Origin: Schizochytrium sp. TIO01
Taxonomy: Eukaryota > Protista > Bigyra: Labyrinthulomycetes
Assembly (NCBI GenBank): GCA_004764695.1
Contig: SMSO01000032.1
Span: 3,194,483 to 3,258,482, forward strand
Length of the DNA: 64,000 nucleotides
Reading direction: 5' to 3'
The translations under genes were made by a program, and so were the position numbers. Numbering within the stretch: position 1 is the stretch's first letter; each line of letters starts with the position of its first letter. The notes beneath the pieces are model-generated. The model was not told the DNA's origin, searched no databases, and saw only the letters and a list, made by a program, of their open reading frames with translations. Positions 15,873-24,443 of this stretch are shown here, piece by piece.

Positions 15873-18800
15873 TTAATTCAAAATATAAGGGCCTAGACAT
15901 CCCAATGCTCCACGAAAGGTAACGTTTGCAACTTCCAGCAAATCAAGCTCTACTTTCTGCGCAGCAAGATAGTCATCTTTCAGACTCAGCTCACCAAAGC
16001 TGTTAGCAGGCCAAGCTTGTGTAAGAAGACTACGCTTCACTGAAAACGGCAGACTAAATACATTGTTTATAACATGTATACAACGAAGCTCACGAGATAT
16101 CTGTTCAAGCATTTTCCTTCTTGTCTTTGCAGAACAAATTTGCTTATTCAACTCGAGCTCCTTGTACATTTCATCCGTCAATTCATCGGACATTCTAAGG
16201 ATCGGTAAAAACCAAATGACATCAACTCCGTTCGTCAGTTAACAATTTCACGTCATCAAAAGGCACCCACAGTATTGCCAGTAAGTTTCATTTATTCTCT
16301 GATATTATCATGTTCTTTGTTACATCTACAATCAACCAAACAAACAATTCCGCAACAAACTTGCAATGACGCGAAGAAAAACATCGGCAAAACAACACCG
16401 TAGACAACCCACGACGCAACCAACCAACCAAGTCTCATGTACAAACAAGTCCACGAGCTATTGCTTAAACAACTTACGATAGTAATGTCAGCGACCAGTT
16501 CACTTTCAGCGCCGCAGCCACTGCCATGGCGCCCTCTGAGCCGATTTCGTTCTCCTCAAGACTGTCGATTTGATTGAATGATGGCAAGCAACACATTACA
16601 CGTTACATATTACAATAGATGCACGCATGCATGCATGGACGTGAGTAATCTAGGTTGGCTTTCAGCATTTATCTTTGTTGTGTTGTCATTTTGCTCTTTG
16701 TTCGATGGATGTATACTCACTCAAACCGACAACTCATCCATCCATCAAACAAACAAGCGATTGCATAAACTTGCAAAACAACACCGACCCACCCACCAAA
16801 CAACAAACCAAGCATCATGTACAAACAAGTCCACGAGCTGCGGTGTTGCGTAGACAACTTACTATAGTGATGCCAGCGACCGGTTCTCTTTAAGCGCCGC
16901 AGCCACTGCCTTGGCGCCCTCGTCGACGATTTCGTTCCACATAAGACTGTCGATTTGATTGAATAATGGCAAGCAATACATTACACGTTACATATTACAA
17001 TAGATGCACGCATGCATGCATGGACGTGAGTGATCTAGGTTGGCTTTCAGCATTTATCTTTGTTGTGTTGTCATTTTGCTCTTTGTTCGATGGATGTATA
17101 CTCACTCAAACAGACAACGCATCCATCCATTAAACAAACAAGCGATTGCATAAACTTGCAAAACACCGACCGACCCACCAAACAACAAACCAACCATCAT
17201 GTACAAACAAGTCCACGAGCTGCGGTGTTGCGTAGACAACTTACGATAGTAATGTCAGCGACCGGTTCTTTTTCAGCGCCGCAGCCACTGCCTTTGCGCC
17301 CTCTGAGCCGATTTTGTTCGCAGTAAGACTGTCGATTTGATTGAATGATGGCAAGCAATACATTACACGTTACATATTACATTAGATGCACGCATGCATG
17401 CATGGACGTGAGTAATCTAGGTTGGCTTTCAGCATTTATCTTTGTTGTGTTGTCATTTTGCTCTTTGTTCGATGGATGTATACTCACTCAAACAGACAAC
17501 GCATCCATCCATCAAACAAACAAGCGATTGCATAGACTTGCAAAACAACACCGCCCCACCCACCAAACAACAAACCAAGCATCATGTACAAACAAGTCCA
17601 CGAGCTGCGGTGTTGCGTACACAACTTACTAAAGTGATGTCAGCGACCGGTTCTCTCTCAGCGCCGCAGCCACTGCCATGGCGCCCTCGTCGCCGATATG
17701 GTTGCATCCAAGACTGTCGATTTGATTGAATGATGGCAAGCAATACATTACACGTTACATATCACAATAGATGCACGCATGCATGCATGGACGTGAGTGA
17801 TCTAGATTGGCTTTCAGCATTTATCTTTGTTGTGTTGTCATTTTGCTCTTTGTTCGATGGATGTATACTCACTCAAACAGACAACTCATCCATCCATCAT
17901 ACAAACAAGCGATTGCATAAACTTGCAAAACAACACCGACTCACCCACCAAACAACAAACCAAGCATCATGTACAAACAAGTCCACGAGCTGCGTTGTTG
18001 CGTAGACAACTTACTTGAGTAATGTCAGCGACCGGTTCTCTTTCAGCGCCGCAGCCACTGCCTTGGCGCCCTCTGAGCCGATTTTGTTCTCTTTAAGACT
18101 GTCGATTTGATTGAATGATGGCAAGCAATACATTACACGTTACATATTACAATAGATGCACGCATGCATGCATGGACGTGAGTAATCTAGATTCGATTTC
18201 AGCATTTATCTTTGTTGTGTTGTCATTTTGCTCTTTGTTCGATGGATGTATACTCACTCAAACAGAAAACGCATCCATCCATCAAACAAACAAACGATTG
18301 CATAAATATGCAAAACAACACCGACCCACCCACCAAACAACAATCCAAGCATCATGTACAAACAAGTCCACGAGCTGTGGTGTTGCGTAGACAACTTACG
18401 ATAGTGATGTCAGCGACCGGTTCTCTTTCAGCGCCGCAGCCACTGCCTTGGCGCTCTCGTCGCCGATTTTGTTCGCAGTAAGACTGTCGATTAGATTGGA
18501 TGATGGCAAGCAATACATTACATTGCAATGCATTACATTGGATGCACGCATGCATGCATGGACGTGAGTGATCTAGGTTGGCTTTCAGCATTTATCTTTG
18601 TTGTGTTGTCATTTTGCTCTTTGTTCGATGGATACATACTCTCTCAAACAGACAACGCATCCATCCATCAAACAAACAAGCGATTGCATAAACCTTCAAA
18701 ACAACACCGACTCACCCACCAAACAACAAACCAACCCTCATGTACAAACAAGTCCATGAGCTGCGGTGTTGCGTAGACAACTTACTTGAGTAATGTCAGC

Positions 18801-21800: not shown

Positions 21801-24443
21801 ACCAAACAACAAACCAACCATCATGTACAAACAAGTCCACGAGCTGCGTTGTTGCGTACACAACTTACTTGAGTGATGTCAGCGACCGATTCTCTTTCAG
21901 CGCCGCAGCCACTGCCTTGGCGCCCTCTGAACCGATCTGGTTGCAATAAAGACTGTCGATTTGATTGAATGATGGCAAGCAATACATTACACGTTTCATA
22001 TTACAATAGATGCACGCATGCATGCATGGACGTGAGTGATCTAGGTTGGCTTTCAGCATTTATCTTTGTTGTGTTGTCATTTTCCTCTTTGTTCCATGGA
22101 TGTATACTCACTCAAACAGACAACTCATCCATCCATCAAACAAACAAGCGATTGCATAAACTTGCAAAACAACACCGACCCACCCACCAAACAACAAACC
22201 AACCATCATGTACAAACAAGGCCACGAGCTGCGGTGTTGCGTAGACAACTTACTTGAGTAATGTCAGCGACCGGTTCTCTTTCAGCGCCGCAGCCACTGC
22301 CTTGGCGCCCTCGTCGCCGATCTTGTTGCTTTCAAGACTGTCGATTAGATTGAATGATGGCAAGGAATACATTTCACGTTACATATTACAATAGATGCAC
22401 GCATGCATGCATGGACGTGAGTGATCTAGGTTGGCTTTCAGCATTTATCTTTGTTGTGTTGTCATTTTGCTCTTTGTTCGATGGATGTATTCTCATTCAA
22501 ACAGACAACTTACCCATCCATCATACAAACAAGCGATTGCATAAACTTGCAAAACAACACCGACCCACCCACCAAACAACAAACCAAGCATCATGTACAA
22601 ACAAGTCCACGAGCTGCGGTGTTGCGTAGACAACTTACTTGAGTGATGTCAGTGACCGATTCTCTTTCAGCGCCGCAGCCACTGCCTTGGCGCCCTCTGA
22701 GCCGATATAGTTGCCGTCAAGACTGTCGATTTGATTGAATGGTGGCAAGCAACACATTACACGTTTCATATTACAATAGATGCAATAGATGCACGCATGC
22801 ATGCATGGACGTGAGTGATCTAGGTTGGCTTTCAGCATTTATCTTTGTTGTGTTGTCATTTTCCTCTTTGTTCCATGGATGTATACTCACTCAAACAGAC
22901 AACGCATCCATCCATTAAACAAACAAGCGATTGCATAAACTTGCAAAACAACACCGACCCACCCACCAAACAACAAACCAACCATCATGTACAAACAAGT
23001 CCACGAGCTGCGTTGTTGCGTAGACAACTTACGATAGTGATGTCAGCGACCGGTTCTCTTTCAGCGCCGCAGCCACTGCCTTGGCGCCTTCGTCGCCGAT
23101 GCGGTTGCTTTCAAGACTGTCGATTTGATTGAATGATGGCAAGCAATACATTACACGTTACATATTACAATAGATGCACGCATGCATGCATGGACGTGAG
23201 TGATCTAGGTTGGCTTTCAGCATTTATCTTTGTTGTGTTGTCATTTTGCTCTTTGTTCGATGGATGTATACTCACTCAAACAGACAACTCATCCATCCAT
23301 TAAACAAACAAGCGATTGCATAAACTTGCAAAACAACACCGACCCACCCACCAAACAACAAACCAACCATCATGTACAAACAAGTCCACGAGCTGCGTTG
23401 TTGCGTAGACAACTTACGATAGTGATGTCAGCGACCGGTTCTCTTTCAGCGCCGCAGCCACTGCCTTGGCGCCTTCGTCGCCGATGCGGTTGCTTTCAAG
23501 ACTGTCGATTTGATTGAATGATGGCAAGCAATACATTACACGTTACATATTACAATAGATGCACGCATGCATGCATGGACGTGAGTGATCTAGGTTGGCT
23601 TTCAGCATTTATCTTTGTTGTGTTGTCATTTTGCTCTTTGTTCGATGGATGTATACTCACTCAAACAGACAACGCATCCATCCATCAAACAAACAAGCGA
23701 TTGCATAGACTTGCAAAACAACACCGACCCACCCACTAAACAACAAACCAAGCATCATGTACAAACAAGTCCACGAGCTGCGGTGTTGCGTAGACAACTT
23801 ACTTGAGTGATGTCAGCGACCGATTCTCCTTCAGCGCCGCAGCCACTGCCTTGGCACCCTCTGAGCCGATCTCGTTGAATTCAAGACTGTCGATTTGATT
23901 GAATGATGGCAAGGAATACATTACACGTTTCATATTACAATAGATGCACGCATGCATGCATGGACGTGAGTGATCTAGGTTGGCTTTCAGCATTTATCTT
24001 TGTTGTGTTGTCATTTTGCTCTTTGTTCGATGGATGTATACTCACTCAAACAGACAACGCATCCATTCATCCATCCACCCATCCAACAAACAAACAAACA
24101 AACCAGCCATTGCATAAACTTGCAAAACAATAACAACAAAAGCAACACCGTGCAAAGCAAGCAAGCAAGCAAGCAAGCAAGCAAGCAAGCAAGCAAGCAA
24201 GCAAGCAAGCAAGCAAGCAAGCAAGCAAGCAAGCAAGCAAGCAAGCAAGCAAGCAAGCAAGCAAGCAAGCAAGCAAGCAAGCAAGCAAGCAAGCAAGCAA
24301 GCAAGCAAGCAAGCAAGCAAGCAAGCAAGCAAGCAAGCAAGCAAGCAAGCAAGCGAGCGAGCGAGCGTCTTAACTTACTTTAGTGTTGTAGCGCCATTCT
24401 GAAGCTGTTCAAGAGCAGCGACAACACGTGGGTGGTCTGACAT
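15873..24443 (-). CDS. Spliced 22-exon gene: cytosolic RI-like/NLRC3-like leucine-rich-repeat protein, 20 LRRs, predicted 688 aa
   Basis: Exon 1 is 24443-24379 (ATG; MSDHPRVVAALEQLQNGATTL). Twenty 84-nt exons follow: 23886-23803, 23501-23418, 23116-23033, 22722-22639, 22337-22254, 21952-21869, 21567-21484, 21182-21099, 20797-20714, 20412-20329, 20027-19944, 19639-19556, 19254-19171, 18869-18786, 18483-18400, 18098-18015, 17713-17630, 17328-17245, 16946-16863, 16561-16478. The last exon is 16194-15873 (the 106-aa ORF). All donors are GTAAGT, all acceptors CAG (last one TAG), all introns phase 2, and there are no stops. 65+20x84+322=2067 nt=689 codons. Repeat consensus xLxxNxIG(S/D)EGAKAVAAALKENRSLT(S/L)L. 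Confidence 0.92.
16431..24130. repeat. ~385-bp tandem array, 20 units (84-nt LRR exon plus ~301-nt near-identical intron)
   Basis: CAACTTAC...A(A/G)ACTGTCGATT(T/A)GATTG recurs mostly every 385 bp (range 382-394). Confidence 0.97.
24157..24367. repeat. (GCAA)~49 then (GCGA)3 microsatellite inside intron 1 of the LRR gene
   Basis: Perfect GCAA run at 24157-24352, ending just before the exon-1 donor (ACTTAC at 24373-24378). Confidence 0.97.

Follow-up and report, generated by a model that had tools for sequence, protein, structure and literature searches.

A 385-bp spacer repeat beside the ribosomal RNA genes of Schizochytrium reads as an intact leucine-rich-repeat gene of a large hypervariable family

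The stretch of DNA analysed here (the window: 64,000 nt of Schizochytrium sp. TIO01, contig SMSO01000032.1, positions 3,194,483 to 3,258,482 of the forward strand) carries a tandem array of 385-bp units between a 5S ribosomal RNA (rRNA) gene and an 18S-5.8S-28S rRNA unit. This array is very probably an intact protein-coding gene of 22 exons on the minus strand, with a product of 688 residues, in which each repeat unit contributes one exon coding for one leucine-rich repeat (LRR). The evidence below supports what is new in this reading: repeats published as spacers hold a large, transcribed, spliced and hypervariable LRR gene family, and the element in the window is an intact member of it. The gene is one of a repertoire of ~100 genes with at least 1000 exons.

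Tandem Repeats Finder called the array as 19.9 copies of a 385-bp unit with 92% matches (16417–24071). Exons were located by a regular expression on the minus strand, AG-(84 nt)-GT[AG]AGT, which returned exactly 20 units, from 23886–23803 down to 16561–16478. All 20 LRR exons were open in a single frame (offset 1), while the other two frames had stops in nearly all units. The phase of the LRR exons is shared by two exons of unique sequence, one with the ATG and the other the last exon of 322 nt, and all 21 introns run GT..AG in phase 2, with sizes of 298–310 nt within the array, 492 nt for intron 1 and 283 nt for the last intron. When joined in a script, the 22 exons gave 2067 nt, or 688 codons and a stop, with no internal stop, and no defect was found in the 22 exons and 42 splice sites. 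Retention of any one intron (all were checked) led to an in-frame stop, and an in-frame stop also lies 7 codons 5' of the ATG. The joined model has an N-terminus of 21 residues, then 20 LRRs, then a helical domain of 106 residues, and nothing else; it has no hydrophobic N-terminus or transmembrane-like segment (maximum 19-residue Kyte-Doolittle mean, 1.36). Much of this had been proposed in a first-pass annotation made from the letters alone. Its claims that every unit is an AG-(84 nt)-GTAAGT minus-strand exon for a 28-residue LRR, and that the unique ATG and terminal exons join in phase into 688 stop-free residues over 22 exons, were reproduced by the regular expression (20 of 20 units) and by the script. 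That exon plus intron is the unit of duplication follows also from the tandem-repeat call and the diversity within and between arrays, and the claimed lack of a signal peptide, transmembrane segment or NTPase domain agrees with the hydropathy of the joined model and with Pfam.

Each 84-nt exon encodes one LRR of the ribonuclease-inhibitor (RNI) type, 28 residues long. Pfam LRR_6 (PF13516) was the sole family found in the five exons tested, all of which matched it (E 7e-6 to 0.04), with single-exon scores of 14.5–26.2 bits against a cut-off of 23.4 that applies to whole proteins. The 20 exon peptides share the consensus L-x-x-N-x-I-G-S-E-G-A-K-A-V-A-A-A-L-K-E-N-R-S-L-T-S-L, and a profile built from them matched NOD2 (5irm, 5irl), RSP15, DRC5, LRRC34, GALA and one axonemal LRR protein in the PDB (E 3e-8 to 5e-3). 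The assignment to RNI/NOD-class repeats made at first reading was thus borne out both exon by exon and by profile. A transcript-derived relative, P0009, was modelled by AlphaFold2 (AF2) as an RNI-type alpha/beta solenoid of six strand-helix turns (pLDDT 77), for which the top Foldseek matches in the PDB were tropomodulin/leiomodin, NOD2, NLRP1/3/14 and ribonuclease inhibitor (E ~1e-9 to 1e-6). The window's protein resembles ribonuclease inhibitor, NOD2/NLRC/NLRP, tropomodulin and DRC5/LRRC34 in its 28-residue L-x-x-N-x-I-G-x-E-G-A motif followed by a helix, and its relative models as the same solenoid. It differs from ribonuclease inhibitor and the NLRs in repeats that vary far less once five hypervariable positions are set aside, and in a C-terminal domain that has no known relative. 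It is also not an NLR, because NACHT, NB-ARC or any other NTPase domain is absent (Pfam on five LRR exons and the terminal domain). A repeat-per-exon structure with symmetric phases is also found in RNH1 and vertebrate NLR genes; a literature search gave no citable source for 84-nt LRR exons in fish NLRs.

The distribution of variation among the units marks them as coding. Nucleotide diversity (pi) within the array was 0.044 for introns compared to 0.5–0.75 at the hypervariable exon codons, which comprise all three positions of codons 3, 4, 6 and 9 together with the junction codon split by the intron; the remaining exon is nearly invariant. The variable residues are repeat positions 2, 3, 5 and 8 plus the splice-junction residue, that is, x positions of the x-L-x-L-x-x-N-x-I-G-x strand-and-loop motif. 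In ribonuclease inhibitor and NLR structures such x positions form the concave face, and by analogy the hypervariable residues are predicted to line the concave ligand face of the window's protein. The window array had no stop in 80 hypervariable codons, compared to 5.7 expected from the base frequencies of the columns (P ~0.003).

The same pattern was seen in paralogous arrays, sampled at 20 terminal exons of paralogues by taking the 10 kb upstream of each, with exon cores located by similarity alone. Over the 21 loci (window plus 20 paralogues), 1080 hypervariable codons contained no stop where 84 were expected, and there was none in all 7290 codons of 270 exons. These exons encode 244 distinct peptides, with an entropy of 3.0–3.6 bits at residues 2, 3 and 5, 1.7 at residue 8 and ~1 or less elsewhere. 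An open frame and AG..GT borders were kept by 269 of the 270 exon cores; one has a GC donor. These counts are the reverse of the random stops and splice-site decay that the first-pass annotation had named as grounds for rejecting the gene; the paralogous arrays show neither. A homologue of exon 1 (ATG, 65 nt, GTAAGT or GTAGGT) was found in 17 of the 20 paralogous loci, and in all 17 the joined frames were open, giving 215–693 residues from 3–20 LRR exons. The hypervariable-codon pattern and the absence of stops are evidence of selection that keeps the frame open. Excess variation is confined to the predicted ligand-contact codons within a frame that is kept open, as in a diversifying repertoire.

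The cassettes do not evolve independently of one another. Arrays of different chromosome ends share 90–99% identity in the consensus intron of their 385-bp unit, even though the terminal exons of those genes differ by up to ~40% in protein (synonymous divergence, dS, 0.39). This indicates that the cassettes evolve in concert across chromosomes, while the contact codons stay diverse.

The family can also be followed by its terminal exon, whose 106-residue translation was matched 101 times in the assembly of 64 Mb, with identities between 34% and 96%; ~90 of the 101 had no stop, and a frameshift was needed in none. Thirty columns are invariant among paralogues, and 17 residues remain so even in comparison with 34%-identical transcript-derived relatives. 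In 14 of the 21 loci, among them the window, the exon has ATG as its first full codon; in the remaining 7 the rule-based acceptor lies further downstream. AF2 predicted a helical hairpin with long helices at 2–35 and 72–105 (pLDDT 65). Foldseek of this domain against the PDB gave nothing below E 3, and the ESM Atlas gave no usable match; zf-C2H2_assoc3, a sub-threshold Pfam match (E 0.12), was rejected. A profile search of 1.84 billion representative proteins returned four matches to the domain and a word-based search of 5.8 billion clusters returned three. The public protein matches are MMETSP transcript open reading frames (ORFs) or short JGI/IMG contigs, apart from P0004, a weak match of 3271 residues (E 7e-4), and there was no full-length gene model of the family among the matches in the searched collections. 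Judged by these sequence searches, the C-terminal domain is a lineage-restricted orphan.

Sequencing runs were found by their share of the words of positions 15700–17400, with shares of 0.23–0.31 guessed to be RNA and shares of 0.42–0.47 regarded as DNA-like. Logan contigs of X1, X4 and X5 (RNA-like; three studies, three organism labels) and of X19 (DNA-like) were then aligned to 15700–21699. Contigs of X1, X4 and X5 sat on exon-containing bins, with intron-only bins at or near zero (for X1, 0 at 18500–18699, 0 at 19300–19499 and 0.29 at 20500–20699); X19 covered 30 of 30 bins. Among these four runs, joints occurred only in X1, X4 and X5. The joint 20797->21099, present in all three, skips 301 nt with CT..AC ends, equivalent to GT..AG on the minus strand; the skipped stretch coincides exactly with the intron that separates exon 9 from exon 10. 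Many other joints match a donor end to the letter on one side (20329, 21099, 21484, 18400), while their other side falls at acceptor 19639 or, after a few unlike letters, inside the variable zone; such joints look as junction contigs from other cassettes would when aligned to the closest conserved flank. In X4, two loose ends correspond to junctions of paralogues, one from the end of exon 1 to the start of an LRR exon (loose end at 20787) and one from the last LRR exon to the start of the terminal exon. The assembly has 978 sites in which an exon end is followed by GTAAGT and 0 intronless exon-exon junctions, and therefore the joined contigs are not genomic DNA. Transcript collections gave a similar picture. 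The MMETSP ORF P0005 (146 residues) reads through an intron tail, the last LRR exon, one junction codon and the terminal exon, and is colinear with one locus of the present genome with ~280 nt removed; the ORFs P0002 and P0009 join several LRR_6 repeats to that C-terminal domain. Splicing and transcription are thus supported for members of the LRR family.

The array corresponds to a published element. In the telomere-to-telomere assembly of Aurantiochytrium limacinum MYA-1381, LORE-TEARS of Group 0 (~385 bp) lie between the 18S and the nearest 5S gene, those of Group 1 (~406 bp) downstream of the 28S gene, and those of Group 2 (~366 bp) nearer the telomere; Collier et al. found the elements to be without similarity to GenBank sequences and suggested that they help to maintain chromosome ends (bioRxiv 10.1101/2023.06.15.545109). 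All three element sizes are present in the window (385 bp x 20, 412 bp x 5 and 362 bp x 4), and the ~385-bp unit again lies between the 5S gene and the 18S-28S genes, with the 5S gene divergent and the ribosomal DNA (rDNA) transcribed away. The window array differs from the typical Group 0 array of Collier et al. in length (20 units compared to ~9) and from the published spacer reading in that its units are the exons and introns of a gene. The tandem elements of Aurantiochytrium that the first-pass annotation had mentioned can thus be identified by size and position as LORE-TEARS Group 0. Its suggestion that they form an unrecognised gene family also held, since only fragmentary MMETSP ORFs were present among 15 billion public proteins. 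A literature search found no other paper that uses the term LORE-TEARS and none that links LORE-TEARS or Aurantiochytrium to LRR genes.

Several observations weigh against the reading of the array as a functional gene. Exon cores were hardly more similar between arrays than introns (identity 0.98 vs 0.97), so there is no exon-over-intron conservation, although this comparison is uninformative because the introns are homogenised too. Pairwise ratios of nonsynonymous to synonymous change (dN/dS) among 21 copies of the terminal exon had a median of ~0.77, a weak constraint from which we conclude that the C-terminal domain evolves fast; constraint on this domain appears instead as absent frameshifts and stops and as the 17 invariant residues. 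Depth derived from contigs is not quantitative, and the RNA status of X1, X4 and X5 is a guess. P0005 matches the present genome at just 84–90% at best, and thus came from another strain or species or from a chimeric assembly. The junction contigs expected at first reading exist at the predicted sites for the family, but none is assignable to the window's copy, because the flanks are conserved and hypervariable signatures (e.g. L-R-S-N-Y) recur in paralogues. Contigs of the RNA-like runs cover the last intron (16195–16477), and the 'complete' MMETSP ORFs P0001, P0010 and P0011 start at the terminal-exon ATG, which indicates that some transcripts are unspliced there or internally started. Finally, evidence for the gene is at the level of DNA and transcripts, and we infer translation of the product from it.

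These points bear on three other explanations. The array might be a non-coding rDNA or telomere spacer repeat that serves chromosome-end maintenance or rDNA regulation, its LRR-like frame being a relic or coincidence. A position between 5S and 18S genes is that of classical rDNA spacer subrepeats, Collier et al. described a spacer without GenBank similarity, and introns homogenised as strongly as exons are what a satellite under concerted evolution would show. We nevertheless consider this reading hardly credible: variation is confined to codon-aligned strand-and-loop positions of the LRR with none of the 84 stops expected in 1080 codons, 269 of 270 exons keep their splice sites, the unique exons at either end of the gene stand in phase, and spliced contigs and transcript ORFs exist. 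A structural role of the DNA alongside coding is possible.

The family could also be real and the window copy silent or newly dead through subtelomeric or nucleolar silencing, a reservoir that donates cassettes by recombination. This would fit a gene that adjoins an RNA polymerase I unit, has 20 repeats (among the longest arrays, compared to 3–20 in paralogues) and to which no junction contig could be specifically assigned. In all four runs, moreover, some contigs have an inserted C after 16283, and at 16327 all contigs that span it have C in place of T. These contigs may thus be from a paralogue or another strain; either the sequenced cultures differ from the assembly or the contigs come from a near-identical paralogue. 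We consider a silent copy unlikely, however, given its 22 exons and 42 splice sites without a defect, a promoter-side exon 1 conserved as in the paralogues, and a 71-nt contig in X1 and X5 that is identical to the window's terminal exon, although this block is common to paralogues. Somewhat less improbable, but still rather doubtful, is a main product other than the 688-residue protein. It could be a short protein begun at the ATG within the terminal exon, made from transcripts that retain the intron or are initiated internally; the prevalence of that ATG (14 of 21 loci), the three 'complete' ORFs that begin there and the coverage of the last intron would be in line with this. It could also be a set of exon-skipped isoforms, since some joints link a donor to a non-adjacent acceptor, e.g. 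20329/19639, which would skip exon 12, and skipping is possible because all LRR exons are of phase 2-2. The non-adjacent joints may reflect either exon skipping or, equally, paralogue junctions aligned to the nearest conserved flank. Against a short product, P0005 and one X4 contig show the last junction spliced, and selection on the hypervariable LRR codons needs a translated LRR part. We therefore retain the intact 22-exon gene as the preferred explanation.

On this gene model, removal of the 21 GT-AG phase-2 introns would join the ATG exon, twenty 84-nt LRR exons and the 322-nt last exon, and the product would fold into an alpha/beta LRR horseshoe followed by the 106-residue helical domain. 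The protein is presumably intracellular and cytosolic, because it has no signal peptide or membrane segment. Its role would most likely be the binding or recognition of varied protein ligands. As for how the family diversifies, the repeat scaffold may be homogenised by recombination between chromosome ends, with the ligand-contact codons staying diverse and free of stops. A wider picture can be drawn only tentatively. The ~100 genes and at least 1000 LRR cassettes in the rDNA spacers at chromosome ends may form an intracellular recognition repertoire diversified in the germline, in which rDNA/subtelomere recombination would shuffle the cassettes and homogenise their scaffold, and the hypervariability of five contact residues in each repeat would be maintained by selection or by a targeted process. 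The phase-2 exons might in addition give combinatorial isoforms, and the system could be innate-immune-like, perhaps directed against resident mirusviruses.

Other repertoires offer partial parallels. Lamprey VLR cassettes and plant NLR/RLP clusters likewise concentrate diversity on the predicted ligand-contact residues of LRR strands, and Plasmodium var and trypanosome VSG genes are likewise large families at chromosome ends, where ectopic recombination is frequent. Unlike these systems, the family in the window shows no signs of somatic assembly, antigenic switching or surface display and looks intracellular; its genes also sit inside the rDNA unit, which is the case for none of the others.

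These results change how the published 'universal subtelomeric rDNA plus LORE-TEARS' architecture of Aurantiochytrium may be read, as rRNA genes interleaved with a large and rapidly diversifying protein family. They also indicate that ~100 genes can escape notice through repeat masking and standard gene calling, of which few transcript fragments with the C-terminal domain of the family appear among 15 billion public protein predictions. The family offers a tractable unicellular model for how LRR recognition repertoires arise and stay diverse under concerted evolution, and for whether genes transcribed by RNA polymerase II inside rDNA units at chromosome ends act as a generator of diversity. 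If the recognition role is true, a unicellular stramenopile would have an innate-immune-like system concealed in repeats annotated as spacers.

Coordinates of the gene and of its neighbours are listed in Table 1.

Table 1. Exons, selected introns and neighbouring features of the LRR gene (positions within the window)
Feature	Position	Strand	Remarks
Exon 1 (65 nt)	24379..24443	-	ATG; donor GTAAGT, phase 2; 21-residue non-hydrophobic N-terminus
Intron 1 (492 nt)	23887..24378	-	holds (GCTT)53 microsatellite
LRR exon 2 (84 nt)	23803..23886	-	regex, joined frame, Pfam
LRR exon 3	23418..23501	-	regex, joined frame, Pfam
LRR exon 4	23033..23116	-	regex, joined frame
LRR exon 5	22639..22722	-	regex, joined frame
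LRR exon 6	22254..22337	-	regex, joined frame
LRR exon 7	21869..21952	-	regex, joined frame
LRR exon 8	21484..21567	-	regex, joined frame, Pfam; RNA-like contigs have joints at its donor end, 21484
LRR exon 9	21099..21182	-	regex, joined frame; joint 20797->21099 in X1, X4, X5
LRR exon 10	20714..20797	-	regex, joined frame, contig joint
LRR exon 11	20329..20412	-	regex, joined frame; many contigs have joints at its donor end, 20329
LRR exon 12	19944..20027	-	regex, joined frame
LRR exon 13	19556..19639	-	regex, joined frame, Pfam; acceptor end 19639 is a joint end
LRR exon 14	19171..19254	-	regex, joined frame; 1072 first-look genome matches
LRR exon 15	18786..18869	-	regex, joined frame
LRR exon 16	18400..18483	-	regex, joined frame, contig joint at 18400
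LRR exon 17	18015..18098	-	regex, joined frame
LRR exon 18	17630..17713	-	regex, joined frame
LRR exon 19	17245..17328	-	regex, joined frame
LRR exon 20	16863..16946	-	regex, joined frame
LRR exon 21 (last LRR)	16478..16561	-	regex, joined frame, Pfam; family-typical 'KVNWSLTLL' ending
Last intron (283 nt)	16195..16477	-	unique sequence
Terminal exon (322 nt)	15873..16194	-	1 nt + 106 codons + TAA; first full codon ATG (16191-16193)
18S-5.8S-28S unit	6578..12091	-	same orientation as LRR gene; 3.8 kb downstream of its stop
28S rRNA	6578-9925	-	
5.8S rRNA	10074-10224	-	
18S rRNA	10307-12091	-	
5S rRNA	24915..25033	+	divergent from LRR gene; 471 bp from its ATG
tRNA-Gly	26016-26086		
Tandem array 362 bp x 4.1	314-1805		downstream of 28S
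Tandem array 412 bp x 5.0	3544-5592		downstream of 28S
Tandem repeat 39 bp x 12.1 (94% matches)	27657-28128		beyond 5S and tRNA-Gly

The microsatellite of intron 1, (GCTT)53, occupies 24155–24366 and reads AAGC on the plus strand (99% matches). Plus-strand ORFs of 91–127 residues lie in every intron (16578–23739), and the one translated was low-complexity and featureless; we did not retain them as genes and regard them as probably a by-product of the A/C-rich strand. Scanning of both strands found no further LRR-like exon of the AG-(84 nt)-GT form in the 362-bp and 412-bp arrays or the remaining window, and the longest open stretch in these two arrays was 87 residues.

Neither TTAGGG nor TTAGG telomere repeats occur within the window. 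Matches to the terminal exon on its contig lie at 25.9 kb (-), 3.168 Mb (+), 3.210 Mb (-), 5.692 Mb (+), 5.729 Mb (-) and 9.024 Mb (+). Because these matches form pairs in facing orientation, three chromosomes seem to have been joined end to end in the 9-Mb contig, and the window seems to be a subtelomere despite its internal place in the contig.

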